Source: Thalia democratica
Taxonomy: Eukaryota
DNA length: 64,000 nucleotides
Reading direction: 5' to 3'
Assembly (NCBI GenBank): GCA_965202585.1
Contig: OZ241827.1
Location: forward strand, 86,490,001-86,554,000
The notes under the pieces are model-generated. The model worked only from the letters and a program-made list of their open reading frames with translations. It was not told where the DNA came from and did not search any database. How positions within the stretch are numbered: position 1 is the first letter of the stretch; each line of letters starts with the position of its first letter. Positions 13,279 to 63,819 of the stretch are shown piece by piece. A program made the translations under genes and the position numbers.

Positions 13279-13685
13279 CAGGGTTTCTACTCAAGCTGAT
13301 TTAACCCTAAAAAATAACATGTAAAAACTAGGAATTTGATAAATTTTGAAAAAATTCTGGAAAAACCTGGAATTGTGAATAAAACTGAGTAAAAAACCTT
13401 AAAAGTTTTTTTTAACAATTTTTGGATGTTAAATAGAAAATTTTGATTTGACACCAAAAATTTACCATGGCAATAAAAAAAATTGTCATCATTAATTTCT
13501 TCATATTAGAAACACATTTAAAGTAGCTTTACAATATATTTCTAATGTTTTTATACTATTTGACACAGTTTCTTGCCTTAAACGTAACTTTAAACTAAAA
13601 ATAGACACAAAATCAAGTATTTTAAAAACCCTAGAAGAAATTTCAAAAACCTATAAAAATTTGCCAAAAGTCAGTGGCAACCCTG
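13279..13685 (+). mobile_element. MITE, CAGGGTTGCCA family
   Basis: CAGGGTTTCTAC ... GTGGCAACCCTG; its 3' part plus ~270 bp of flank is duplicated at ~14600-15095. Confidence 0.75.
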
Positions 13686-14491
13686 TGTTAAATAAAATGC
13701 TTGTGGTATTTTAATGATTTTTTGAGTAGTGAATATTAAAATAACTGCAAAATATAAAAGTTTAATCTCATTTCAATAAAATAATTTTTAGTTTATAGAG
13801 CTTGAAGCAACAATTCTGAAATAGGGTTGATTAAAAGTAAGATACTCAGTATAATTTAAAGTTTTTATAAACTCAGTGCAACTGAGGCTACTTTTTTTGT
13901 TAACAGGATGATTCAAGCCATTATAGTGGTATTTAAAAAGAAATTGGTTAATTTAGGTATTATCAAAAATCTCTAGTACTTATTTAAATCTCTAAAATAT
14001 GAATGAGATATTGTTGTTCAATATCTAATAATAAGATATTTTATAGCTAAATTTGTTCAAAAACTTAATTTTTATTGTTTTTAAAAAGTTTTTAGATTTA
14101 AATACAAATTATTCAAGAAGTATATAAAGGATTAAAAAATTCATGATAAATAAGTATTGTTTAATATTGTTTAATGTCACTAAGGACAGATTTAATTGAG
14201 TTTGCCAAGCACAAAAGATATCTCAGGATAAATTTAGTATGTATGGGTAGTTTTTTGTATTTAATAAATGACAATCCTGTTAACTGTAAAACTGATTAAA
14301 GATTAAAGACTCTTATAAAGTATAGCTATTTAAAAACAAGTAGTTCTAAATAATGTTCAAGTTTACCTAAAGTTTAGCTTGTTAGTTTTATTATTGATTA
14401 CCTGAAGTCATTCTTAGAGTCTACCATTTAAAAAAAAACTGAAATTAGAGTCACAAATATATTGTTTAACAAAAAACTACACCTATGTTAA

Positions 14492-14826
14492 CAGGGTTGC
14501 CACTTTACCTGAAAAAGTCTGAAGTTTAAATATTTAGGCTATAAAAAATTAAAAAAAAAAACCTGTTTTTTTTTAAATTTTGAAAAAAAAACCTGGAATT
14601 TTGAACAAAAATCTTTTTAAAACCTGAATATGTTAACAATTTTTGCATGTTAAATAGAAAAATTTTGATTTGACACAAAAAATTTACCATGGAAATAAAA
14701 AATTTTTGTCATCATAAAGTTTTTTTTTATTAAAAAACACATTTAAAGTAGCTTTACAATATCTTTTTATTCTGGAAGAAATTTGAAAACCTGGAAAAAA
14801 TTTGCCAAAAGTCAGTGGCAACCCTG
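14492..14826 (+). mobile_element. MITE, CAGGGTTGCCA family, 6-bp TSD TGTTAA
   Basis: CAGGGTTGCCAC ... GTGGCAACCCTG with TGTTAA on both flanks. Confidence 0.85.
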
Positions 14827-15458
14827 TGTTAAATTAAATGCTTTTGGTATTTTAATGGTTTTTTGAATAGTGAATGGTAAAATAACCACAGTATATAAAA
14901 GTTTAATCTCATTTCAATAAAATCATTATTAGTTTATAGAGCTTGAAGCAACAATTCTGAAATAGGGTTGATTAAAAGTTAGATACTCAGGATAATTTAA
15001 GATTTTCATAAACTCAGTGTAACTGAGGCTAGTTTTTTTTTGTTAACAGGATGATTCAAGCCACTATAGTGGTATTTAAATAGAAATTGGTTAATATAAG
15101 TAAATTCAATTAAACTTAAATTGTTTTCAAGTTTCATTTATTTAAAGTTATTTATAAAAGTAACTTATATTTTTGAAATAGTGTTGTTATAACAGTGTTT
15201 TGTGGTTATTCTATATATTAGATACATTACTGAAACTGTCTTGTCTGGTTTTTATAAAGTAGCATCTTGTATTTCAATTCTAGATAACAATTAAATAAGT
15301 AAGTATTTAATTATGACTAGTAGTCCCAACAAATTAAGATACCAACATCCATGCCTTAAAAATTTGCAAAAATTTTAAAACATATACGTTAAATAAAACT
15401 ACCATAATATAAATTGAAATTATTTCAGAGCTGCAAATTAAGAACTAAAGAAAGTAAT

Positions 15459-18400
15459 ATGTTGCAACAACAAAACTCAAACACCTTAATGGTTTCCCAG
15501 GAACATTCCAAAAATTCACAGGAAAGTTCCCAAGTTACATCTGAAGTAACAATAGTAAGTTTTTATAATTTGGATTTTAATTTTCACATACACCTGCTTG
15601 ACATATAATTAATTTATTGGTTAAATGAAATAAAAGTTTCTAGACATTACTCAAACCAGGAGGCCATGAGGTTTATTATTAATTTTCTATTATAAGTTTT
15701 CATTGTGAGCATTTTTATCAGTAAAAGACTTATCACAAGCTATTGAATTTATAAATTATGCTATCAAAACTAATTAAGGTTGTAAAATAATAATTCTTTT
15801 CTAAATTGAGGAACATGCTTACTTGATAAATAATAATAAAGTTTAATTTTTGAAAATTTAGGTAGGTGGTTCCGACCAGTTGCCAAGTCCGACTTCCGTC
15901 AACTCAAAGAAGAGGCAAATGACCACTAATGATAAACTTCTGGTGAAAAAACCAAAGATGGACATTCTCTCTGTTGCCTGTGAACGCAGCGGCATCAAAA
16001 TAGCTGTAAGTTGAAAGTATTTAATCAACATGTCATTGCTTTTCATTTTTTGCTTTTTAGTACGGTACCCATAACTCAAGCAAGTCACACTCTTTAAGTC
16101 GAATAATACATGAAGTGAATAAATAATTGATAAGCAATTTTCAAATAGTAAATAAAATATTATGATCAGTCTAAGATAGACAATGTGTCTTTAATAATAG
16201 TAATTGTCTTATTGGTACTTTTTTTACTTTTTTGCCTAAAATAGTAAAAACTAAGTATAACTTAGAAAGCAATTTGTGTAACTTAAAATAAAAAACAAAT
16301 GTAACTCAGGTGGGTGGGGAAAGCAACGACAACCAGCAACCGAACCAGGACTTGGTTGACTTTTTAGTGCCAGGTGAAACTTTCCAACCCACACAAGATG
16401 ATGTTGTATACCTGGAGAACGTCAACGACCCAACTTCTGTTGTGGTTCCTATTACTCGTGACATTTTTGACAGGATGTGGGACAGTGAGATGAAGACCAA
16501 AAAGTCGCTCAAGATCGGATGGCTGGATGTGAGTTTTAAAATTATGATGACATTAAATTTGTTTAAAAAAAAAAACTTGATGTTAATTGTTCTTACTAAA
16601 TTAAGAACATAACTAGCAACAAACACTAAAAATTAAAGTAATGTCAATGCCTCTTAACAACTGAGCATTGAAAAAATAATTTTCCCTGGTAAAAAACGAA
16701 TGCCATAATTTTTTCGACACAGATCTTCCGCGAACTGACGTGCGGAAAGATCAAGAACTGCGAGCTGACAGATACAAGCAATTCTTTCTACTTAAAGAAG
16801 AAAAACATCATCAAGCTCAGGATGAAGTGCTTTACCTGCAAAACATGCCCCGTAAAGTTAGTGGATTTTAATATATAAAGTTTCATTAGAACAATATTCT
16901 ATTAATTATTTATTGATCACCTATAAATTAAAATTTTAAAATTTAAACTAAAAGAAATAAGATTTAATTAATAAACTAAAATTGATATCTTAGTTGTTTA
17001 AACGAGTAAATCATTGCTTTGTAATAAAATTTGAAAATATAAAGTGAAAATTTATATTCTGCAAATTAGTACCAAAAAGATTGAAATAGCTTTGGTCGTC
17101 AGTAATAAAATTTTTAATCACAATCAGTATAACTTGAAAAAAGTTCTTTACTGTTTTACTATATTTTTCTTTTTATTATATTATGATTTTTCACCTCGTT
17201 TAGTTTTATAAAAATGCAAATATATTTTTTTTACAGATGGGAAGGCATAGTTAACCCTGAATGGTTGATCCTTTGCAGGATTGGGACGCCCAAACACAAA
17301 AAAGGAGAAATCAGGAAATTGAGACTGAAGCCCCACCAGACCAGTGAGTGTATGCATGACTTTAAATAATTGTCTTTAACTGAAATAGTTTAGCTACTTT
17401 TTTGTCTTATAATTGGTTTAATGTTTGTTGTATTTCGTACAAACTTGTTTTGGTGTTCAGCACTTATTTTCTAATTTTCATCTGTTATCTTTTTTTCCAC
17501 TTTTTAAATTTATTAATGTGATGCATATTGAAATGTTAATGTTTGTACTGTTTGTAAATTAAAAATAAATAACACAATATTAACCATAAGGTAAATACAT
17601 CAGGCACAAATAATAACCACCCTTTTTTGTGAGACATTACCCATTTACTATTCAATATTACAACAATTCAACTTTAAGATATATTTTATTTCTTTTTAAT
17701 GTATGAAAAAGTGTTTTTTTTTTGTGCGTGTATTTCATTGAAGCAATAATTCAGTATTTTTTAATCGTTTTTTTTACTCTAATTATACTTTCTGTATGTA
17801 GTATTAAAAGTTAAATTTAAAATGCTTGTTTAATAGAAAAGAAATTAAGAACATTATAAATAAGAAACTTTTACACATACCAATTAGTAAGAAATTAACT
17901 TGTAAAGATAAGATGCTATAAAAATATTGAGCTAATAAATTCTTAATTTTTTTTGTAAAAATTAGTGATAATCTTTGAATTGGAAATTTTATTATCTCAA
18001 TTTTTAATATATCTATAGTTTGCCAATTTAGCAGCGTATAAGTTAGGATATGACAAACAAGTAACTAAATCAATTTAATATTTGATTTTTTTTTTCTGAC
18101 AGTTGTGGAAATATTATACTATTAACCATACTTGTCATAAAATGGTTTCACCTGTTTTATATTATTTAATACTAGATTTTAAAGTCAGTATGATAATAAG
18201 AAGTTGGGAAATTTAGAAAATACACTCTTTTCTTGAACTTATTTGTGCATGAATTTGTAATATTTATCGTGAACTTTTACATAAATAACTTATAAGCTTA
18301 ATATTAAAGATACCAACTGTATATAAGATAATAACTAAAAAACTAGATGAAAGTTGAAATAAAATAGACAGCTTAGATTTTTTATATTTCTTTAGTTAAG

Positions 18401-21400
18401 TAAATAAAATTACCCAAAATAACATTTTCGTAATCACTTTATCTGTGTTTTAGTTTTGTTTCTTGCTAATAAGTACCCCTAAACCACCTTATTAATTTTT
18501 TTTAATTTTCCTTCTTCATTTACTGTTAACATCTATAACCAAAAGTTATTATATTTGAGCAAATTAAGACAGTCATTCTATAATTGAAGTCATTAGTTTA
18601 AATTTTCTAGTAATCTTGTTTTCTTTTACCCTTTTGTTTTAGTTTTTTATATAACAATTCTTGGCTATAAAAATGTTTTTTTGATACTAATGTTGGAAAA
18701 TTTATATAATTATAATTTTCTAATGCTAATAAGGTAAAACACTTATACTAATTTCAATTGTTTCTAAATTCTGGCTTAGCTGGGATAATTTTTATTTTTA
18801 GGTTTTTCCAAAATCTCTCAATTTCTCTTCTGCGATATGTTTATTAGTGCTGATTTATATTTTCTGTCTTGTTGATAGCTATACTTAAACATGATATTTT
18901 TTATTTATAGTTGATTGCTGATAATTTGATAAGTGGTATAAAAAAGTAATTCCCCAAATTTTAAAGTTATTAATTTATTATTGATATTTAATAGAAATGA
19001 TCGGAGAAGCTCTAGAAAGTTCTAAAAGCTTGGAGGAAGTCAAGAAAAAGTTTTCAAAAAGTTTCGACCCTATGGCCTACAGAGCAGGTAACTATTATGA
19101 TAAACAATTTTTTGTTAGTTTATTAAATTATATGTTTTAATAAATAAGCATTATAAGTGAACAAAACCTGTCAAATTAGTAATTTCTGTACACTGAGTCT
19201 TGTGCAATATTAAACTTTTTTGATTCCTAATTTAAAATAAAAAGCATGTATTTTTGATAATAAATTATTACTTACCAAAATTTTTGTATATACTTTTAAG
19301 TATACAGTTTTTTTACGTGACTTATACTTTATAAAATACATATAAGATATCCATACATATTCATATAATACTGATATGAGACCACGTACATTAGTAATTT
19401 CGTAATGTATTACAAACAACTTATTTTCGCAGGCAACTTGAAGGGAGTTATCACAGACAGTCTACTTTCGGGAGTAAAGCAGCGTTATAAAGCTCAAAAA
19501 TCTAAACAGAAGAAAAACAAAGCGCAAAAGCAACCAGAGGTTAGTAATTCTACAAACTTTTACATAATTTATAACAAAAAGTACCAATTATGCATCACAT
19601 TTATTTAATAAGTTTATAGTATATATAAAAATGTAAAGTTTGTATAAGAAATAGCCGATTGAATTTTAAACATTACCATTTTTTAATTAAAATATTAAAA
19701 TATCAACATATAAAAAATTTAAAAAATAGGTTGATATTTTGGACCCTGCAATGAGTTCAGACGAAAACAACCGAAAGAGAAAATATCTGGATAATCCAGC
19801 AACTCCCAACAAAAAGTTGCGTAAATTAACAGTGAACGGAAAGAAAACAAAACCAGTTGCCAAAAACGTGGTTGGTTTTTGAATGTTTTTCTAAGCAAAT
19901 AACATTTCTGAGTTTTTATTATGCAAAGCTTAATACGTGAACTCTAATAAAAATAATATTTTTTTTTAAACCTGTAGACCAGTATCGTTCCATTTAAGAC
20001 ATGTAGACTTTAAAACTTCCTCTTTCAACCCAAGGTTCAAATGCAAAGCTTTTTGCCTTTTTCAATATTTCTTTTGCGCTTACTACTAAGTTGCCAAAAA
20101 ACCTGGGTTTGACAATTTAGGCTAAAAACCTGGAATTTTAAACAATCTGTACCTGTTACATTTAAGTTACCTTAAACTTAACTTTGAACTAAAATTAGAC
20201 CCAAAAATGTATACTTTTAAAAACCTGAAGGAAATTTTGAAAACTTAGAGAAAATTTGTCAAAAACATTTGGCAACCCTGTTACTACCAAAATCTAATGT
20301 GTAAATTAGATTTTAATAAATCTAAAGCAGTTATATAAAACTATCGAGCCTGTATACCGTAAAATTATTTTATTGTTTTTAAAACTCATTCAAATTTCTT
20401 AAGTGCTAAACTATTAAACATCGCAGGTTCAGATGCCGAGTTTTTTTCCGGCAGCTTTGCCATCGACCAATTCGATCAAACATTTACTGTCTTTGGCCAA
20501 TAGCAGCCGAGGATCAACTCAAAGCAAACCTCCGCTGCTGGTGGAAGTTGTGTGTGACGATCCGAACAACCCGAGAGTTTTGAACGAGGTATTTATTATT
20601 ACTTATTTAAATAATTTTTATTGATAAATATTTTAGAATACTAAAAATAACTTCAGTAGCATAGTTCAATTTTCATAAAAATAAAATATAACAATTGAAA
20701 ATGTTCAGTTTTAATTAATTGCATTAAGTAACATCTAGCTGTATACAATTAACTAAAGTGAAAATTTTCGTTAAAAGTAGTTGAACTTTTATGTAAAAAC
20801 AAACTAAAAATGTGTATAAGATCATTTTCATGATGCAAGTTATTTTCTACTTATTATTAATCTACAAACTTTAAAGCTAAGTAATAATTTTATTTTTTAA
20901 TGAATTACAGAACAGTAATGGTTGGAAAGAAAATTGTTTTTCATCGAACAAAAGCGTAGACGAGACGACAAAATACCAGCAATTAGTAAGACAAGACAAA
21001 GAATCTAGCCATTTGATATCTGAAACTATAAAAGAAGCTGCTCAGGTTTTTTGTTGTAGTTGATCATTTTAATTGTTATTAAAAGTTATTTTTAGAGCCA
21101 TAAAAAAACATTTTTAAGATTGTGATCAAGGAAAAAATAGTATTCTTTTAGTAAAAATCAATTTTTTAGTTGTTAGTAACTCTGCGTATTATATTTTTAT
21201 TGTTAAAGTTTTAAAGTATAATTGTGCCTTACAATACATTTTACTTCACAGAATATCTGCAAGCTGGTAGATAGAAAGATGAACAAGAAGAAACGAAATG
21301 AAGTGGAACAGTTGAAGAATGAACTGGAACGATGCCAGACCCGGTTCGGCACCATCAGCACCAACCAGCAGGTTGACATCGTTGGAGGACATAACTTGTT

Positions 21401-22681
21401 GCAAACAGCGCCTCCAACCGGACATTCGGGAGAGGTTGTGTACTACCGTCAATATTACAGAAACCTGATCAGCCAAACTGATCTAAACAACAAAATTGTG
21501 GCGACAAAACTGCTGAAGGAAATAAACCAACAATTGATGAGGCGAGACAGAGAGTATAGGAATTTAATAGCTGATACTAGAGAAGTAGCGTTTCAGGTAA
21601 GAACTACGGTTAACTTGATTTCGTAAAAAAAATTGAAAAACTTTTTGAAAACTTAGATTTTTTCAATTTTTACAACTATACAGTTATATACAATAGTTAG
21701 AACTTATGTAAAGATCAATAAAAATTAAATGTTAAAAAACTAATAGCTAACTTTTGAAAATTTTTCTGCTTTCCGTATCGTGTATTTTACTTAGTTTAAT
21801 CCGTAAAAAAACTTTTTTTGTTGTAACTGATCATTTTATTTTTAATATCAGTTATTTTCATAGCCATAAAAAATCATTTTTAAGATGTCATCAAGGAAAA
21901 AAAAATATGCCTTTAGGAAAAACCAATTTTCAGCTGTGAATAACTCTGCCTAGTACATTTTTTATTTTTAAAATTTTATAGTATACTGAATAGTTGTGCC
22001 TTACAATACATAACTACTTCACAGATCGTCTGTAAGCTGGAAGACAAGTACAAGAAGAAAAGGAAGACACGAAATGAAGAGAGAAAGTTGAAGAAAAAGC
22101 TGGAACAATGCCAGACTCTGTTCGGCACAATCAGCAACAACAAGCAGGTTGTAATCGTTGGAGGACAAAACTTTTTGCAAACAGCGCCTCCAACCGGAAA
22201 TTCGGGTGAGCTTGTGAACCAACCTCAATCCGACCGAAATAACCTGATCAGCCAACCTGAACAAAGCAACCTGATCAGCCAACCCGAACGAAGCAACCTG
22301 ATCAGCCAACCTGACCGAAACAACCTGATCAGCCAACCTGACCGAAACAACCTGATCAGCCAACCTGAACGAAGCAACCTGATCAGCCAACCTGAACGAA
22401 GCAACCTGATCAGCCAACCTGAACGAAGCAACCTGATCAGCGTAAACAACAATGAGGAGCAAAATTTCGAAATGTTCGACCTCGAGAACTACAACTTTGA
22501 CTTCGACTCTAACGGTGATCCTCAGGACACAGTTAGTTTAGAACGTGTTAGTTTGCTCGACTCTAACGTTGATCCTCAGGACACAGTTAGTTTACAAAAC
22601 GATGATCCTCTAGCCCCGGTTTTTTACGATCCTTGTACTGAAACGTGGTATAAATATTACTTATGTTGTATCGTCAAATAG
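15459..22681 (+). CDS. Intact multi-exon gene (paralog A), ~779 aa (797 with optional exon 3): transposase-derived (NOF-FB/MULE-like) Cys/His N-terminal domain, Lys-rich NLS-like segments, coiled-coil and 9-aa repeat tail
   Basis: All introns are GT..AG and the phases join without a stop: E1 15459-15554, E2 15862-16005, (E3 16061-16114 optional), E4 16310-16528, E5 16723-16856, E6 17237-17343, E7 18995-19087, E8 19433-19539, E9 19730-19870 (donor could be 3 nt earlier), E10 20427-20588, E11 20911-21045, E12 21252-21596, E13 22025-22681. The E5-E8 junctions are phase 2, 1, 1, 0 and stay open. Core: GWLDIFRELTCGKIKNC...KCFTCKTCPVKWEGIVNPEWLILCRIGTPKHKKGEIRKLRLKPHQTKMIGEALE...AYRAGNLKGVITDSLLSGVKQRY. 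The domain assignment is recalled similarity, not a search. Confidence 0.85.
20086..20280 (+). mobile_element. Short intronic MITE, CAGGGTTGCCA family, 6-bp TSD TTACTA
   Basis: Degenerate 5' TIR CTAAGTTGCCA, 3' TIR TGGCAACCCTG; TTACTA at 20080-20085 and 20281-20286. Confidence 0.75.
22234..22441 (+). repeat. Coding 27-bp tandem repeat x8 (NLISQP[E/D][R/Q][S/N])
   Basis: AACCTGATCAGCCAACCTGA(A/C)CGAA(G/A)C units in the last exon of paralog A. Confidence 0.95.
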
Positions 22682-36010: not shown

Positions 36011-36692
36011 TGTTTTTTTTATAAAATTTTGAGCATTAATAGTAAAAATAGTACACAAGTTAAATGGTTTTTTTTTGAAACATGCGCTAAATAACATTTT
36101 TATTTATTACAATTACAATGTTTTCAACAGTTGAAAAAGTATTTTTTACTCAAATTTTTTTTTAGATTTGTTTAAAAATTTTGATAGTAAGATTACACAT
36201 TTCTGAAACTGTCATTCTGATTTGTATACAGTAGACTAAAATGGCATAGGAATCATAAAATAGTAATTAATTAAGGTAGATTTAATTATGATGAGTAGTA
36301 CTAATGAATTAAGTGTATCAAAATCTATACTTTAAATCTAACCTAAAATAATATAATTATATAAAAGTTATAGATTAGTGATTTATATTTTCAATAGTTT
36401 AAAAGTATATCATACTTTTAATAAAAATACAATAATATAAAATGAAACTTTTGGTTAAAACAAGTTACGTTTATTCCAAGCTATTTATAAAAGTCACTAA
36501 TATTTCTGAAACAGTGTTGTCATAGTAGTGTTTTGTGGTTCTTTTATATAATAGATACATTAATAAAACTGTCTTTTTGATTAGTATAAAGTAGACTAAA
36601 ATAGCATAGTAATTATAACTTATAATAATTTTAACATCAGACTTTATTTTGTTATTTTTTTAATGAATAAAAGAACACTCAAATTTTTTTCA

Positions 36693-36726
36693 TTCCAATA
36701 TATTTCGTCAAATTCTCTTCAGGGAA
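36693..36726 (-). ncRNA. Minimal type I hammerhead ribozyme motif (inverted arm)
   Basis: Exact reverse complement of 38378-38411. Confidence 0.65.
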
Positions 36727-37354
36727 ACTACAATTGAAACAATAAAATAAAACACAACAAGTATATATACAAAATAATATTTTTTACAAACTAATTAACT
36801 GATCAATTAAGTAAACATAAATGTAATCAACGAAAATGTAATCAACAAAGCTTTAAAAATCAACACAAAGTGGTCTTAACTAAATAAAGCTAGGGTGTAA
36901 TCAAATTCTTTCTTTTTGCATAAGTTTGGTTTGTTTAAATGTATTAAAATGGCTTCAAGTCTGATTAAATCCAATGTATTTGAACATTGTCGCATTACAC
37001 TGAAATTAGATACTGCAAACTTTTTTCCACAACTTGGATTATTCACAAGGTGTTCTGCTATCGCAGATTTTTTTATTGCATTTTTGACCAGCATTTCTGG
37101 ATAACTATTGAGTTTAAGAATTGACTTTATATTGTTAACTTCATCGGATAAGTATTCTGGTGAGCAGATTTTTTGTGCTCTACTGTATAGAGTCTTAATC
37201 AAACCAATTTTTCTACGTTTACTACAGAATGATTGGAAGTTTAAGTAGTTGTTGTTGAAGGTAGGCTTTCTGTATACTTTAGTTGTGAATTTTCTATCTT
37301 TCTTAACAATCAGAACATCGAGAAAAGCTAATTGGTTACTTGTTTCAGATTCTA

Positions 37355-38228
37355 TCAATCCATTAAGTTTACCAAAGAATCTGAAACAAGTAACCAATTA
37401 GTTTTTCTCGATGTTCTGATTGTTAAGAAAGATAGAAAATTCACAACTAAAGTATACAGAAAGCCTACCTTCAACAACAACTACTTAAACTTCCAATCAT
37501 TCTGTAGTAAACGTAGAAAAATTGGTTTGATTAAGACTCTATACAGTAGAGCACAAAAAATCTGCTCACCAGAATACTTATCCGATGAAGTTAACAATAT
37601 AAAGTCAATTCTTAAACTCAATGGTTATCCCGAAATGCTGGTAAACCGAGTAATTAAGTCACAGTCTACCAATTCAAATATAGCCAAACCTTATGGACCG
37701 GATAAATGCCCAATTTTGTTAAAACTTCCATATATTGGTGTCGAATCGAAACTAATTGAGAAGAAAATAGTGGATATAACAAATAAAACATATCATGCGG
37801 TAAATCTTAGGGTTCTGTTCATGTCAAAACCAATACTTCAACGTTCGGGAAAAGACCTGATGACACCTCAAGAAAAGAGTCTTGTAGTTTACAAGTTTAA
37901 ATGCTGCTGTAACAGCAGCTACATTGGTCAAACTTCTCGACACCTCACAACTAGAATAAAGGAACATGTTCCCAAGTGTATCACTTCATATATTAAAGAC
38001 GAAAAGAGTGATGCAGTCAAAAATGCAATAAAAAAATCTGCGATAGCAGAACACCTTGTGAATAATCCAAGTTGTGGAAAAAAGTTTGCAGTATCTAATT
38101 TCAGTGTAATGCGACAATGTTCAAATACATTGGATTTAATCAGACTTGAAGCCATTTTAATACATTTAAACAAACCAAACTTATGCAAAAAGAAAGAATT
38201 TGATTACACCCTAGCCTTATTTAGTTAA
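37355..38228 (+). CDS. Penelope RT C-terminus plus GIY-YIG endonuclease (truncated, no RT catalytic core)
   Basis: SIKFTKE..QLVFLDVLI, TKVYRKPT (RT C-terminal part/thumb); VVYKFKCCCNSSYIGQTSRHLTTRIKEH (GIY-YIG with Cys/His); LEAILI..KPNLC. Confidence 0.9.
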
Positions 38229-38377
38229 GACCACTTTGTGTTGATTTTTAAAGCTTTGTTGATTACATTTTCGTTGATTACATTTATGTTTACTTAATTG
38301 ATCAGTTAATTAGTTTGTAAAAAATATTATTTTGTATATATACTTGTTGTGTTTTATTTTATTGTTTCAATTGTAGT

Positions 38378-38411
38378 TTCCCTGAAGAGAATTTGACGAA
38401 ATATATTGGAA
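38378..38411 (+). ncRNA. Minimal type I hammerhead ribozyme motif in Penelope 3' UTR
   Basis: TTCC-CTGAAGA-G aatttga C-GAAA-TATA-TT-GGAA: stem I TTCC/GGAA, core CUGANGA and GAAA, 1-bp stem II, palindromic ATATAT stem III. This is the expected position for Penelope hammerheads. Confidence 0.65.
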
Positions 38412-39031
38412 TGAAAAAATTTGAGTGTTCTTTTATTCATTAAAAAAAAAATTATAATTTAGTAATTAAATAAGTTAGTATTGATTTATGACTAGTAGTC
38501 CTAACAAATTAAGTATACCATCATCCATGCAAAAATTTATATTTTTTACATGGAATTTTATTAAAAAATTTATTAATTTTGTACTAAATTACTGCTAGTA
38601 ACAAGACTTTTTTCATTTAAATAGTTTATTGAGAAATGCTTTCAAAATTTAAATAATTTCCTTTTCTAAACAAAATAGATACTCACCAACATTAATTAAT
38701 CAAACGAAGTACGAGTAAATAAAACAAACTATCAGTATAAAACTAATCAAATTGATCATAAAAATTAAAATAGATAATTAGAACAAAAATGGACTATCTA
38801 AAAATGTTAAGTGTAATTCTGGATTCTTTATCAGGACCTAGTTGATGATTAAGTTTAGGTTTAATTTTTTTAATCATAATAGCCTCTACTGCAAGTAAAA
38901 TATTTCTATTATTACAAAATTTAGTTACCTCATAACAATTAAAAATATCATTATGATTTTGACAGAAATTACATTTTTCTATATGTGAGAATACTGCACT
39001 ACTTGTAGGCTTTGTATATTCTTTAACTCAG

Positions 39032-41460
39032 ACAGTATGAGGGAAGTTTTCACAAAGAGGTAAATTTTGGGGGCAAAGCAGCATTTGAAAGCTCAAAATG
39101 CTAAACTTCTTTAATTCTGACGAACAGTTGTCGCTCCGTTTCTTTAATATATTAGGTACCCAGGTCACCTGAACATTGAAACTTTTAAACGATGCAATTT
39201 CTGTAGATTTTATTGATCTGGTCTTTTAATGAAAAATAGTTTCCAACTTTAGATGTTCTGAATGTTACTTTAATATTAATAACAATTGTTTCCAAATTTT
39301 TTGTTATATTTCTGCTGAATTTTTCTGAAACCTATTTTATATATGTAATTGTTAAATATTGTTGTTCAGGAAGCTGTGGTTTATCTTCTAATTTTTGAAA
39401 TGTTTCTTTTTCATTTGTTATGAATTAAAATTGGATAACTGTTTCTTAAAAAAAGATTCTTTATTCTATCTATTTCTAGGTTCTGTAGTTCTTTTGACAC
39501 TAATCTTTTATTTCTGATGATTTTTTCTTCCATGATTGCGGGGTACAAGAGTTAAAATTAAAAAAATACCGTGTTCATTTTAAATTCAAATATACAAGAT
39601 TTTAATAATCTACTAGAATTGTTTATAAAGTTGTTAAAACGAGTGAAGCATTGTTTTGAAAATAAATTTTAAAAATATAAAGTAAAAATAAATAGTTTGC
39701 GAATTAATACCATTAAGTGTAAAATAGATTTAGTTGTCAGTATGTTTTTTTTAATTATTGTCAGTATAACTTTTACTATTTACTGTTTTACTTTCGTTGA
39801 TAAAAATAAAAATGTATTTTTTTACAGGTGGGAAGGCAATCAGGAAATTGAGACTGAAGCCCCACCAGACCAGTGAGTGTATGCATGACTTTAAATAATT
39901 GTCTTTAACTGAAATAGTTTGGCTACTTTTTTGTCTTATAATTGGTTTAATGTTTGATTTATTAAAAAAAATTGTATTGGTGTTAAAAATTTATTTTTCT
40001 AATTTTCATCTGCTCTCTTTTTTCAATTTTTTATATTTGTTGGAGTGATACATATTGAAATACTGCAAAATTACTATACAGCAATAAAGCAATATTAATC
40101 ATAAGGCAAATGCTTGTTGGTATTGCTAATAAGATAAAACTTTAATACTAGTTTGAATTTATTTAAAATTCTGGCCAAGCCTGGAAATTTTACTTTTTTT
40201 AGGTTATTCCAAAATCTGTAAATTTCTCTTTTGTGATAAGTTTATTAACGCTGATTTTAATTTTCGGTCGTGTTGATAGCTTTACTAAAACATAACATTC
40301 TTTGTTTATAGTTGATTGCTGATAATATGATAGGTTGTATAAAAAGTCGTAATTTATTATTGATATTTTTGACAGAAATGATCGGAAAAGTTTTAAAGCA
40401 GACTAAAAGCCTAGAGGAAGCCAAGAAAAAGCTTTCGGTAAATTTTGACCCTATCGCCTACGGAGCAGGTAACTTAAATGTTTAACTATATTTGATACTT
40501 AATTAAAGTTTATTTTAACATATAAGTAGTAAAAGTGTACAAAATCTGTCAAATTGCATTTTTGTACTTTGAGTCTTGTGTAATATTAAACACTGTTGAC
40601 TCCTAGTTTAAAATAGAAGGCATATTTTTATGAAAATAAATTATCATCTACATAAATTTTTGTATATAATTTTAAGTATATTGTTGTTGTTGTTATTGTA
40701 TGAGGCTTATACTATCTGAAAAACATAAAAATATCAGTACATATTGATTTAATTCTAATATGAGACATGGTACATTAGTAACTAAAAAAATAATTACATT
40801 ATATACAATTAAACAATTACTTATAACAAATAAATTAACTTATTTTCGCAGGCAACATGAGGGGAGTTATCACAAAGAGGCAAATTTTGGGGGCAAAGCA
40901 GCGGTTGAAAGCTCAAGAAGCCAAACTGAAGAAAAACAGCGCGCTAAAGCAACTAGAGGTGAGTAATTATACAATTATGACTTGATTTTGTATAAATTTT
41001 GAGTAACTTTTTAAAAAACTTAGATTTTTTCCTACTGTTACAATTATACAGTTATGTACAATAGTTAGAACTTATATAAAATCAATTAACATTTAATCAA
41101 TATATTTTTGGTTAACTTTTGAAAGTTTTTCAGCTTTCCATTAAATGTATTATACATAGTTTTATCCGTGAAAAACTTCTTTTTTTTTTGTTGTAATTGA
41201 TCATTTACATTCTTACTACGATTTATTTATAGGCATTAAAAATTAAAATTAAGACGACGTCAAGGAAAAAAAACAAGGAAGGAACGAAGAAAAATGAAAA
41301 AGTTGAAAAAAGAACTGAAACAACGTCAGGCCCTATTCGGCACCATCAGCAGGATGACATCGTTGAAGGACATAACTTGTTGCAAACAGCGCCTCCAACC
41401 GGAAAGTCGGGAGAGCTTGTGTACCAACCAAACGGTGATCAACAGAACACTGATCAAAAC
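39032..41460 (+). pseudogene. Paralog B of the 15459-22681 gene, disrupted
   Basis: Stray exon-8 copy with a stop at 39032-39114; exon 6 at 39828-39872 (62-nt frameshifting deletion); exon 7 at 40376-40468 and exon 8 at 40852-40958 (both open, splice sites intact); degenerate terminal exon ~41280-41460. Exons 1-5 and 9-11 were not found. Confidence 0.85.
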
Positions 41461-42192: not shown

Positions 42193-43381
42193 TGTAAGCA
42201 TTGCGCCTGCTTCGCACTGCTTTTTTGAAGAGAAGAGAGAAATCTTTTTTCTTCGAAAAGCAGACTGCATAAAAATAGACGTCGCAAGAAGGGCGTAGGC
42301 ATTGTTATTATACATTCAGCGAAGAGGCATTCTTATTAGGCATTGTTTATTACACATTCAGCGAAGAGGCATTCTTATTATACAGTCAGCGAAGACGCTC
42401 GATTTAGGCTTTTGAGTTTCACACTTTCAACGGAGACATTTGTCTTACATTCAGCGAAGAGACTTATTTTTCACGTAGCCAGTCCGCATAGACGTTTGAT
42501 CGAGAGATTCAGTTTCAACCCGAAACGAATACCGGCGTTAGAAACCAGCTCGAGACTTGTAGTAGTAAGTCTAGCGATTTGTTGTGGTAACTTAGTTCCT
42601 GAGCTTTTGACCTGCACGAGTGTGAGTGTCTCTTTTTTGTATCGTATTAGTAGTTTTAAGTGTAAAATAAGTTTTGATTTAATAATTCACTATCTAACAG
42701 TTTAATATAACTAACTAAATTTAAAGTTATCTAAGTTAGAATATAGTAAGTTAACGGTTGATTACGAAAGTAGCATTTGTTAAGTATTTACTAATTTTTA
42801 ATTGACTACGGTAAGTGGTCAATATTATACTAAGTCGAGCCTCGTTTAACCATACCTTGTTTCCAGTTCGCATTACTGAGCTCATTCTCGGTTAAGTGCG
42901 GTGAAAAATCAACAGTTCGCATTACTGAGTCCCAACTTGGTTAATTGCGTAGAATTCGTACCAATTCGCTTACTGAGCGTTGACTCGGTTAATTGCGGAG
43001 AATTCTTACCTGTTTGCATTTCTGAGTTCTATCTCGGTTAATTGCAATTGATTTCTTCACGGAAACTCTCCGGTTGGTTATTTCCTTGAAGAATGAGTTC
43101 CAAAAATAGGAATCCCAAAGCCATGTCAGCAACCCGCATCACTGACATGGTCAAGAAGCACACGAAGCGTGCACACTCGGCCGATAAAGCGTCTAGCTTT
43201 AAGAGGCGAGACCAACAAAGTAACTCCGAGCTGTTAGCAGATTCTCACATACCAACATCCAAATCTAATACTGCACAAACTGCAACTACAAATCAGGAAA
43301 CATTCAAAGCAGAACCTAACAATATACACAATAGACAAACAAACAAAGTAGAAAACACAGAATCAACAGCAGAGGGTTATA
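42193..43381 (+). repeat. 5' LTR (1189 bp, TGTAAG...GGTTATA)
   Basis: Matches 54725-55913 at a constant offset of 12532; six substitutions seen by eye. Confidence 0.92.
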
Positions 43382-55913: not shown

Positions 55914-57678
55914 TCAATTAAAAAAAAGGTGGATCCTTAACATTTTTTTAATGTAAAACAAAAAACACTTGAAAATAAGTTTAACTCCCTGTTTTATTGG
56001 TATAACTTAACATCTAAAATACTTTAGTCGTTTTTTACAGGACATTATCCAACTGGACAAAATTTCCGCTTGATATATGGCTAAAAAACCAAGGAGTTTA
56101 AACTAACCAAACTGGAAAAATTTAAACTGGTCAAAAAGTTTTTCTGCAAAATATTATAAAAAATATAAAGAAATAAAAAATAATTAAGCTTAAATTTTAA
56201 CAATGTAATTATGATTTTCGTTAAAAGTTATTAATAAGTATATAAGCTAAAATACACACGTAATATCGCTATAAAAAAATTAAACAAAACTAAAAAATAT
56301 TCTCAAATAAAAAATACTATTGTAATTCGTTAAAAACATTGTAATTGTAATATAAAAGTGTGTTAATTAACTGTTTTTTTAGTGCAGATTTCAATAAAAA
56401 TTACTTTAACTTTTGTCTTTGTCAAATATGAAAGCTTAAAATTTGACATAAAAACACTAGTATAGTTTCTTTTTCGGCATATATACTAATCTTATATATG
56501 TTCTGAAATAAACTAATACTTTATTAAAAAGTTTCAAACTTTGTAATTGTGTTATCAAACTGCTTATCTAGCGTTTATTTCAATAAATAAACATACGTTT
56601 AGGCCAGCATCTTGTACTGGGTTGACTTTTTTTTATAATCGAGTGTCGCTTATAATAATAATAGTCCTATATTCTTTTTGTACTTGTTAAATACACAATC
56701 TACACTCATAACTTTTACCTAGAGTGCAATTTTTCAAGAAGGCAATATGAAAAAGACTAATTACCTTTATTATGTATTCAGATACCTCTTAATCATTTTA
56801 TAGACTGTGTATGACATTTGTACCTCCATTTTCAGAAAATTTACAAACATTGGTTTCTATTTATTTTTCTAATTGTTTTGTCATCTTCGTTTCCAAGTAA
56901 AACTTATTCGATATTAGTTTGCTCACAATCCGCACATTAAATCAAATTTATTAATATAAACATAAATAGTTTAGCAAAGTAAACTTACAAATAGCTTAAA
57001 GTTTTTGTTTCTGTCCTTAAACACCGAAACAATTTATCTGGTCGTTTAATTTTTGCATTTTCCTAAATGAGCCCCTTTTCACTCCTTATAAACTTTTGTA
57101 AAAGACAGCCTTCAAAAATTTTAACATCTAACAAAATAATTTTTGATAAATGGTAAATAAATAAAACGAAAAGCTTAAAGAATTAACTAAAAGCTTGTCC
57201 TAATAACAATTTTAAACATAGGTTTTAAAATTTAACATTGCAATAAATATAATGGTGTTGTCAACTTTTTGGTAACTTTATTGTTAATATTATCTCAATA
57301 ACCTGGTCGTGTAACACATTTCCTGGTTTTAAAGTTTTGTACTCATTGTTATTTATTTATAAAACTGTCGTTTCATCATTAATTTAAGCTTAATATTAGA
57401 TAACACTTACAAAAACTTTACTTTCTTTAGCTTGCATAATTTTTAAGATTATATATTGCAATGAACTATTAACTCTTTTAGAAGCTACATAATTATTAAT
57501 ATACCGAACCTTTTTTTTTTGTAGTATTAAGGCTTATAGTGTCACATTTCAAAGTCTTGCAGTGTTCCATCAAGTGGAATCTTTTTATAAGATTTAAAAA
57601 AAAAACTTAATAGTCAAACTTCTCACCTTGAATTTATGTTAATAAAATCTTTTGTTTGATTAATTTCATCGTCTAGGT

Positions 57679-63741: not shown

Positions 63742-63819
63742 ATGTCACAACAACAAAATACCTCCACAATTTCCCATAAAAATTCAAAAAATTCACAGGA
63801 AAACTCAAAAATTACAATA
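63742..63819 (+). CDS. First coding exon of paralog C (gene continues beyond the window)
   Basis: Acceptor TTTCAG at 63710; ATG 63742; MSQQQNTSTISHKNSKNSQENSKITI then GTAAGT. Flanks 63555-64000 match 15295-15740. Confidence 0.8.

Follow-up and report, generated by a model that had tools for sequence, protein, structure and literature searches.

A clustered family of host-type genes in Thalia democratica has probably taken its exons 3–7 from the DNA-binding front end of an intron-bearing, Foldback/NOF-like transposase gene of the Mutator superfamily. The member studied here lies in the window, by which we mean the whole analysed stretch of 64,000 nucleotides (assembly GCA_965202585.1, contig OZ241827.1:86,490,001-86,554,000, forward strand; all coordinates below are window-based), and it is a transposon-derived coding sequence without transposon ends. 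The family as a whole is of transposon origin, has lost the catalytic core and the terminal repeats, is transcribed and spliced and has kept its reading frames. We call it domesticated because it is expressed, its frames are kept and one old paralog gives a dN/dS of 0.45, with the young copies at about 1.

Results

Spliced by script, the window gene consists of 12 coding exons at 15459-22681 on the + strand, whose 2340 nt form one open frame of 779 aa, in line with the 12–13 exons and the single frame of about 780–800 aa of the original prediction (Table 1). Every exon is bordered by AG...GT and the introns (n = 11) are of the GT-AG type. All motifs quoted in that prediction were found in the spliced product, namely ..KIGWLD/IFRELTCGKIKNC.., ..KCFTCKTCPVK/WEG.., ..IGTPKHKKGEIRKLRLKPHQT.. 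and ..AG/NLKGVITDSLLSGVKQ.. (the slash marks a splice junction). A possible acceptor at 15427, 5' of coding exon 1, suggests an additional 5'UTR exon upstream, which would account for the earlier numbering of the present exons 3–7 as E4–E8. Exon 12 reads TTA where the paralogs L026 and L027 have a TAA stop, extending the protein by 6 aa.

Table 1: Features of the window gene and of related sequences in the window.
Feature	Position	Strand	Remarks
Exon 1	15459..15554	+	predicted ATG at 15459; aa 1-32; conserved in paralogs L026-L029
Exon 2	15862..16005	+	aa 33-80; Ser/Lys-rich; without transposon counterpart
Exon 3	16310..16528	+	aa 81-153; transposase-derived module begins at 16409; ends ..KIGWLD
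Exon 4	16723..16856	+	conserved Cys ligand candidates (KNC.., ..KCFTCKTC..)
Exon 5	17237..17343	+	final strands of the predicted WRKY-GCM1-like sheet; conserved His (..IGTPKH..LRLKPHQT)
Exon 6	18995..19087	+	initial helices of the HTH-like three-helix part (MIGEALES..MAYRAG)
Exon 7	19433..19539	+	HTH-like part ends (NLKGVITDSLLSGVKQRYK); first basic cluster
Exon 8	19730..19870	+	basic, NLS-like (..NRKRKYLD..PNKKLRKL..KKTKPVAK..)
Exon 9	20427..20588	+	matches confined to the C2 gene cluster
Exon 10	20911..21045	+	spliced to exon 11 in X4 record 29
Exon 11	21252..21596	+	aa 447-561; tandem paralog of exon 12 start; basic cluster and heptad-like helix
Exon 12	22025..22681	+	stop codon; basic cluster, 27-nt repeats, acidic tail
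Zinc module span with introns	16409..17306	+	predicted WRKY-GCM1-like; aa ~114-221; mapped by alignment to model residues 13-116
HTH-like module span with introns	17310..19515	+	predicted three-helix part; aa ~223-292; model residues 118-186
Partial diverged family member	39836..41448	+	end of exon-5-like, exon-6-like, exon-7-like and terminal-exon-like pieces; 46-66% aa identity
Related transposase C-terminus fragment	56693-57443		in same window

RNA-type evidence came from the contigs of one small public run, X4, whose run type is not on record; the run searches returned none recorded as RNA. These contigs cover exons only of the window-gene family and no intron. Records 25 and 27 span exactly 16310-16528 (exon 3) and 16723-16856 (exon 4), and record 28 (1566 nt) matches 19728-19873 with 0 mismatches and thereby sets the donor of exon 8 at 19870. 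Record 29, a contig of 832 nt, runs across exons 10-11-12 with its joins where they had been predicted, and its 23 mismatches in exon 11 assign it to a paralog rather than to the window copy. The junctions are thus supported by exon-only contigs, and transcription and correct splicing hold at the level of the family, not for the window copy specifically. Together with the gap-free alignment described below and the colinearity of the 12 exons in four paralogs, the contigs place the gene model beyond chance.

Residues 114-284 of the window protein (exons 3–7) align with residues 362-532 of the ORF of L024, a transposon located elsewhere in the same genome (37% identity, 172 aa, E 8e-30). The alignment runs gap-free across four splice junctions, and the homology to the transposase stops at aa 284, within exon 7. 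L024 itself has an intronless ORF of 1314 aa and is flanked by long inverted arms of ~396-nt tandem repeats. Its family has 122 matches in the genome, mostly with stop codons, and more than 100 decayed dispersed copies. In all nine dispersed copies examined the repeat arm is joined to aa 577 of the ORF at the same junction, which points to one amplified deletion derivative among them and rules out chance truncation as the cause of the loss of their N-domain.

Three introns of the window gene match those of the intron-bearing transposon copies L032, L035 and L025 in position and phase: the intron after exon 3, the one after exon 5 (phase 1) and the one after exon 6 (phase 1, in the Gly codon of ..AG/N..). 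The intron after exon 4 (CPVK/W, phase 2) is private to the window-gene family. The comparison did not extend to the third copy of this intron-bearing kind near C2:86.68 Mb. The three inherited introns show that the window family arose from the genomic DNA of a transposon gene with introns, rather than from a retrocopy.

The core of L024 holds D52, D135, C187, H190 and E366 in alignment A2 (D..D..C-x2-H..E), and the order of N-domain and core recurs in animal proteins, among them those of mussel, sea cucumber, fish and insects. The cluster look-ups returned nothing named 'NOF'; their matches, from sea cucumber, fish, mussel, bugs, thrips and firefly, were unnamed or 'hypothetical' proteins, some of which carry a Ulp1 protease domain. 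As predicted originally, a DDE core with its C-x2-H is absent from the window gene, where tblastn of the whole L024 ORF matches exons 4–5 only. Inverted repeats of at least 60 nt bracketing the gene are absent from window positions 1-42000, and neither tandem arrays nor similarity to the L024 arms were found near it, so that the gene has neither TIRs nor repeat arrays at its sides. The two checks that could have overturned the original reading, on the junctions and on flanking TIRs, thus both left it standing, and its other testable parts were supported as well.

For the fold of the retained module we used AlphaFold models of two parts of the L024 ORF, not of the spliced window protein. The N-domain model (m8db20ef4d02f, pLDDT 85.8, strands at 62-108) has as its best structural match in Swiss-Prot the NOF-FB protein P16320, residues 110-269 (probability 1.00, TM 0.52); next in rank are WRKY factors, yeast alpha3 and FRS10. 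The core model also matches P16320 best (residues 300-661, E 1.9e-15, TM 0.68), ahead of alpha3, ZSWIM, IS256 and FAR1. These two first-ranking matches and the homology to L024 bear out the proposed NOF-FB-like N-terminal origin. Against the PDB, Foldseek ranks AtWRKY18, AtWRKY1 and AtWRKY2 first for the N-domain (probability 0.84-0.99), and VIA-align finds AFT2, WRKY33 and WRKY1 at Z 5.3-5.6. Model residues 118-186 match the HTH domains of Myb, Tc3, SETMAR and resolvase by VIA-align with middling scores (Z 5-6.5). By these models the retained module combines a WRKY-GCM1-like, four-stranded antiparallel zinc sheet with a three-helix HTH behind it; the scores for the sheet are moderate, yet consistent and in accord with PMC1702500, and they agree with the WRKY/GCM1-type fold expected beforehand.

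The candidate ligand pattern of the module is C-x24-C-x5-C-x22-H, and its Cys and His are kept in all paralogs (five copies) and in the transposon copies. Searching for C-x4-5-C-x22-23-H-x-H/C we found C-x5-C-x22-H conserved and the second His/Cys absent in all members; the invariant Cys 24 residues upstream may be the fourth zinc ligand. A classical WRKY protein was ruled out, as the signature WRKYGQK is absent from the window protein sequence. The Pfam models FLYWCH, FAR1 and MULE matched neither the single exons nor the L024 ORF, and FLYWCH and MULE were also missing in ten related proteins. As Phantom/FLYWCH-type Mutator elements are defined by the Pfam FLYWCH zinc finger together with the Pfam MULE domain (PMC3169594), this type of element was rejected as well.

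Behind the module, basic, coiled-coil and repeat segments had been predicted, and we found three Lys/Arg clusters (aa 287-294, 453-462 and 567-588), a single helical segment of heptad-like character (aa 527-568) and in exon 12 a 27-nt/9-aa tandem repeat of 7.4 copies, NLISQP[ED]R[SN], at 22241-22441. Exons 8–12 have no relative outside the gene cluster, and a query of the ESM Atlas with exon 11 gave no usable match.

Five intact paralogs lie within 0.4 Mb; the family is multi-copy on both strands, and apart from decayed remnants its copies form one 0.45-Mb cluster on C2, of which the sixth and seventh members lay outside the comparison. Colinearity extends over the full set of 12 exons in four paralogs, and in five the exons are all open; L028 carries a C-terminal frameshift, and decayed copies are present on C6 and C1. 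The old paralog L029 shows a dN/dS of 0.45 at a dS of 0.46 over 506 codons (Z ~5.6 from counts), and its introns can no longer be aligned while all its exons stay open. The four young paralogs have dN/dS values of 0.6-1.5, about 1, and their exons have diverged at least as much as their introns, as expected under relaxed or diversifying evolution. Indels number only one, in-frame, in 5.0 kb of exon, where ~17 would be expected, versus 45 in 13.3 kb of intron. In the protein collection no annotated homologue was found, and word-indexed searches gave transposon fragments only and no named protein.

Discussion

The ancestral DDE core and the transposon ends have been lost, and we propose that unrelated basic, helical and repeat-rich exons came to stand in their place. 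With its Lys/Arg clusters as import signals the window protein would reach the nucleus and bind DNA specifically by the bipartite module of zinc sheet and HTH, and the helical segment at the border of exons 11 and 12 may allow such proteins to pair. Its role would be to bind DNA, with no activity as a transposase. Its most natural targets would be the repeat arms of related Foldback elements, presumably recognised by the ancestral domain, and if so it could compete with the transposase or recruit silencing against it. Tentatively, the cluster might even represent fast-turnover decoy repressors that only bind DNA, sit on Foldback arms and block or silence related elements in an arms race. If true, this would account for reading frames that stay open at a dN/dS of about 1, for copies that arise and disappear and for gene conversion between exons 11 and 12. 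What changes in the arms race with the transposons would then be the number of genes, the tail of 9-aa repeats and the surface of the protein.

The family could also be an expressed relic, that is a truncated transposon fragment fused by chance to neighbouring exons, segmentally duplicated, functionless and decaying. The dN/dS of the young copies, exons conserved no better than introns, the L028 frameshift, the partial or decayed copies at 39836-41448, on C6 and on C1 and the lack of an annotated homologue in the protein collection would all fit a relic, but it is hard to reconcile with L029, where every exon is open at a distance that has made the introns unalignable and dN/dS has stayed well below 1, and with the purging of exon indels. 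Given moreover the Cys/His ligands retained in five of five copies, the intact splice sites and the spliced transcripts, we consider a relic unlikely.

Another reading makes the unit the cargo of a large, still mobile and possibly non-autonomous Foldback-type transposon, so that the gene would belong to the transposon rather than to the host. The genome does contain related Foldback/NOF-like elements with intron-bearing transposase genes, the window-gene family is multi-copy on both strands, and part of the C-terminus of a related transposase is present in the same window (56693-57443). However, the lack of bracketing inverted repeats of at least 60 nt within positions 1-42000 and of arm-like arrays near the gene, the confinement of its copies to one 0.45-Mb cluster, save the decayed remnants on C6 and C1, and a homology between copies that exceeds 10 kb, as in segmental duplication, make a mobile cargo highly improbable. 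The introns common to the window family and the transposon genes would by themselves give no direction, and an old host DNA-binding domain might have been captured by transposons. This reverse direction seems the least probable of all, as Drosophila NOF has N-domain and DDE core in the same order as proteins of mussel, sea cucumber, fish and insects, whereas the core-less form was seen only in one gene cluster and the decayed remnants on C6 and C1. We therefore favour the origin of exons 3–7 from the front end of a transposase gene.

Among known systems the closest is the NOF-FB 120.7 kDa protein of Drosophila melanogaster (P16320), in which, judged from the L024 model, an N-terminal module of the same fold likewise precedes the core; the identity to the L024 models is ~14%, taken from structural alignments. 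The L024 element also shares its Foldback-type tandem-repeat arms. Unlike P16320, the window protein loses homology just before the catalytic core, and its gene has 11 introns, no arms and another C-terminal half. Babu et al. (2006, PMC1702500) described stand-alone WRKY-GCM1 proteins derived from MULE transposases, with a helix before the first strand, as a route to new DNA-binding factors. Such proteins, and FLYWCH and GCM1 of animals, carry the zinc-binding four-stranded sheet of a Mutator-type transposase without a transposase domain, as appears to be the case here, but the window module lacks the second His and any Pfam FLYWCH, FAR1 or MULE match and keeps the HTH-like part. The domesticated Mutator transposases FHY3/FAR1/FRS of plants, alpha3 of Kluyveromyces lactis and ZSWIM of vertebrates belong to the same transposon superfamily and are among the structural matches of both module and core of L024; they retain the transposase-derived core, whereas the window family retains only the DNA-binding front end. 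The KP protein of the P element is a repressor that consists only of the DNA-binding domain of a transposase and is encoded by an internally deleted transposon. By analogy, the window protein could as a front-end-only derivative occupy transposase binding sites, but unlike KP it is encoded outside of anything recognisable as an element, by a unit that has acquired further exons and makes up a cluster of genes.

Conclusion

In summary, the window family is a clear case of the reuse of a transposon part by its host, though one with precedents and of a kind already known. Gene finders and Pfam miss the window family, and the protein collection searched lacks it. It offers a clean, datable example of a transposase front end turned into a host-type gene, in a genome where the donor superfamily, the Foldback/NOF-like Mutator elements, persists with a full-length copy. 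A candidate DNA-binding factor is here paired with its likely ancestral targets, the repeat arms, and the idea that factors of this sort start out as repressors of transposons thereby becomes directly testable.

Results and Discussion

Gene model and transcription

The window corresponds to C2:86490001-86554000 of the 802-Mb genome and is AT-rich, with 22–31% G+C around the window gene. This gene consists on the plus strand of twelve stop-free segments with AG and GT at their borders, which after splicing by script amount to 2340 nt in a single frame encoding a protein of 779 aa. The original prediction had described an intron-rich host gene built on the N-terminal Cys/His domain of a transposase, and all of the strings that it quoted could be recovered in exons 3–7. 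In the rest of the protein Lys and Arg residues cluster at three places; it also has one charged, heptad-like helical stretch where exons 11 and 12 meet, a 27-nt repeat (7.4 copies at 22241–22441, encoding NLISQP[ED]R[SN]) and an acidic tail. The starts of exons 11 and 12 are paralogous to each other, and the two exons are therefore products of a tandem duplication. The copy number of the 9-aa repeat varies among the paralogs of the C2 cluster, with roughly 16 in L026, about 1 in L027, 7 in L028 and 7–8 in the window gene. L026 and L027 end with ..WYKYY and a stop codon, where the window gene has TTA and continues for 6 aa more.

Three independent lines support this gene model. An intronless ORF at another site in the genome aligns with the spliced protein, and this alignment runs over four junctions without a gap. 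In four paralogs all twelve exons are present and colinear, and their splice sites are intact. Furthermore, contigs of the public run X4 (47 million letters, type not on record) lie on the exons and hardly on the introns of the window gene. Two of them correspond exactly to 16310–16528 and 16723–16856, and a third matches 19728–19873 with 0 mismatches, which fixes the exon donor at 19870. An 832-nt contig joins exons 10, 11 and 12 where predicted; as it differs from the window exon 11 at 23 positions, it stems from a paralog. Transcription and splicing are therefore shown at the level of the gene family, not of the window copy itself. The three large runs are DNA and cover the introns too. In the DNA runs the summed contig depth over a short repeat in intron 8 reaches about 400,000–570,000, compared with about 500 in its flanks; this repeat looks MITE-like and carries the motif AACCTGGAA.

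Origin from a Foldback-type transposase

The exon 4 and exon 3 peptides also hit sequences that do not belong to the gene family; these hits are weak and colinear, and one falls in an ORF on C8 (locus L024) that encodes 1314 aa and has no introns. Residues 114–284 of the window protein align with residues 362–532 of this ORF (37% identity, E 8e-30), and the ORF is part of a transposon, which places the origin of this domain in a mobile element. The middle part of the ORF is matched at 122 sites in the genome, mostly by sequences carrying stop codons, and the ORF is flanked by inverted arms that are 90–95% alike and made of ~396-nt tandem repeats, an arrangement of the Foldback type. The nine other copies examined all represent one deletion derivative, with the arm running straight into codon 577 of the ORF, leaving L024 as the sole full-length member among these ten copies. 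The ORF contains N-terminal repeats, the WRKY-like module, a DDE core and a C-terminal PHD finger.

Pfam recognised no domain in the L024 ORF. An exhaustive phmmer search with the core found 173 relatives in animals, of which the named ones belong to a sea cucumber, a fish, a mussel and insects, some with an Ulp1 protease domain. In the core alignment D-x-T-G, D, C-x2-H and N-x2-V-E-x-W-F-x3-K are nearly invariant. The AlphaFold model of the core (pLDDT 78.5, pTM 0.79) matched first in Swiss-Prot the 120.7 kDa protein of the Drosophila melanogaster NOF-FB element (P16320, residues 300–661, E 1.9e-15, TM 0.68), followed by K. lactis alpha3, ZSWIM9/1/3, IS256-family transposases and FAR1/FHY3/FRS. 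All of these are Mutator-type or Mutator-derived, and the Mutator superfamily is home to most Foldback elements (PMC4079207).

When the full-length 1314-aa ORF was compared with the window by tblastn, exons 4 and 5 were the only parts of the gene to match, and the catalytic core is thus lost. The same search hit an unrelated fragment at 56.7–57.4 kb on the other strand, outside the window gene, which resembles a Foldback/NOF-like transposase C-terminus. The transposon ends are lost as well: no inverted repeats of at least 60 nt bracket the gene within positions 1–42000, no tandem arrays beyond the coding repeat of exon 12 occur in that interval and the L024 arms do not match the surroundings of the gene. 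The two structural checks that could have refuted the original prediction thus both came out negative.

The retained module

We modelled residues 355–560 of L024, a homologue of the window protein, using a 25-row alignment including the window exons (pLDDT 85.8, pTM 0.72). The first Swiss-Prot match of this model was again P16320 (residues 110–269, probability 1.00, TM 0.52), with WRKY factors, alpha3 and FRS10 coming next, and Foldseek against the PDB placed AtWRKY18, AtWRKY1 and AtWRKY2 on top with E values above 0.01. VIA-align split the model into two parts, of which residues 13–116 matched AFT2, WRKY33 and WRKY1 (Z 5.3–5.6) and residues 118–186 matched Myb repeats and the HTH DNA-binding domains of Tc3, SETMAR, resolvase and IstA (Z 5–6.5), values of 5–6.5 being middling by the tool's own note. 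Together these matches point to a predicted bipartite DNA-binding unit, with a WRKY-GCM1-like zinc sheet and a three-helix HTH. Its conserved candidate ligands read C-x24-C-x5-C-x22-H; throughout the family the second His of classical WRKY domains is absent and the upstream Cys is invariant. With a local HMM the module was also detected in proteins from other phyla, where it immediately precedes the core (i-E 7.5e-5 to 4e-3 among 160 sequences). It follows that this order of module and core is the ancestral one of the transposons and that the window gene, which has no core, is derived.

The introns show how the window gene arose. At four diverged transposon-type loci (L025, L030, L032 and L035) the module is followed by the core, tandem-repeat arrays adjoin and the genes contain introns. 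In L032, L035 and L025 three introns, one following ..W-x-[EDQ], one following ..QT (phase 1) and one splitting the Gly codon of ..AG|N.. (phase 1), agree exactly in position and phase with introns 3, 5 and 6 of the window gene; intron 4 is private to the window gene family. The window gene is thus a descendant at the DNA level, and not a retrocopy, of a transposase gene with introns, the 3' part of which was replaced. L032 (C2:59.79 Mb), L035 (C4:60.77 Mb) and C2:86684195-86685397 are diverged relatives of the L024 transposase; their genes are interrupted by many short introns (50–70 nt) and adjoin tandem arrays with a 188-nt unit. One of these loci is no more than about 60 kb away from the end of the gene cluster. 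They are either mobile elements or further domesticated genes.

Gene family and selection

Five intact family members lie on both strands of C2:86.22-86.62 Mb, with a further piece at C2:86.66 Mb, and decayed copies with stop codons and lost ligands occur on C6 and C1. The C6 copies show the same exon pattern as the window-type gene together with stops and missing Cys ligands, which is evidence that family members arose and died on another chromosome. Between young copies the homology extends past the 10-kb loci, as in a segmental duplication. No relatives of the C-terminal exons were found outside the C2 cluster. Further features are collected in the table.

Features in the window and related loci (window positions unless a chromosome is named)
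Feature	Position	Strand	Details
Window gene	15459-22681	+	12 exons, 779 aa
Very high-copy short repeat	20050-20450 (intron 8)		similar stretches also at 13361-13959 and 14500-14860
Inverted repeats of 407 nt (perfect) and 270 nt	36682-38422		around an ORF of 298 aa and a partial, inverted duplicate of it
Partial, diverged family member	39836-41448	+	46-66% aa identity
Transposase C-terminal-like fragment	56693-57443	-	aa 1044-1172 and PHD-finger end; 28% identity, E 3e-11
Exon-1-like start of another family member	63742-63816	+	MSQQQNTST..SKNSQENSKIT
L024, full-length Foldback-type element	G000:C8:20940000-20949999		1314-aa intronless ORF between inverted arms
L036, L018-L021, four decayed window-type gene copies	G000:C6:68.67-68.73 Mb		inverted pairs

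The partial member comprises the end of an exon-5-like piece (AIRKLRLKPHQT) and exon-6-like, exon-7-like and terminal-exon-like pieces; its large intron is mostly gone, and it lies about 750 nt before a Gypsy LTR starting near 42193. The exon-1-like start at the very end of the window resembles exon 1 of the old paralog L029. The inverted repeats at 36682–38422 look like head-to-head copies of retroelement-like sequence.

Comparing the window gene with L029, whose introns are no longer alignable, gave dS 0.46, dN 0.21 and dN/dS 0.45 over 506 codons, with pS exceeding pN by about 5.6 standard errors as calculated from codon counts. Among the four young copies dN/dS is 0.6–1.5 and exon divergence is on par with intron divergence; part of the exon 11 excess looks like conversion from exon 12. 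The introns of the young copies show 45 indel events in 13.3 kb, compared with one in-frame 3-nt indel in 5.0 kb of exons 1–11, where about 17 would be expected at the intron rate, a count inflated because three comparisons share the window lineage. The frame of the protein is thus kept while its residues change fast.

Possible function and relation to known systems

The basic clusters might mediate nuclear import of the window protein, the sheet and HTH would allow sequence-specific DNA binding and the helical segment might serve for pairing. It is a speculative and rather unlikely idea that the protein acts as a decoy or silencer by binding to the arms that flank related Foldback elements.

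Domestications of whole transposases are well known in the same superfamily, as in FHY3/FAR1, alpha3 and ZSWIM. Stand-alone WRKY-GCM1 domains derived from MULE transposases have also been described already (Babu et al. 2006, PMC1702500). In contrast to these cases, the donor lineage of the window gene is NOF/Foldback-like and invisible to the Pfam models FLYWCH, FAR1 and MULE, and the gene is predicted from the models to keep the HTH along with the sheet. It also differs from them in having three introns inherited from the transposon gene, in the clustering of window-type genes with birth and death of copies and in the fast evolution of the family's proteins.
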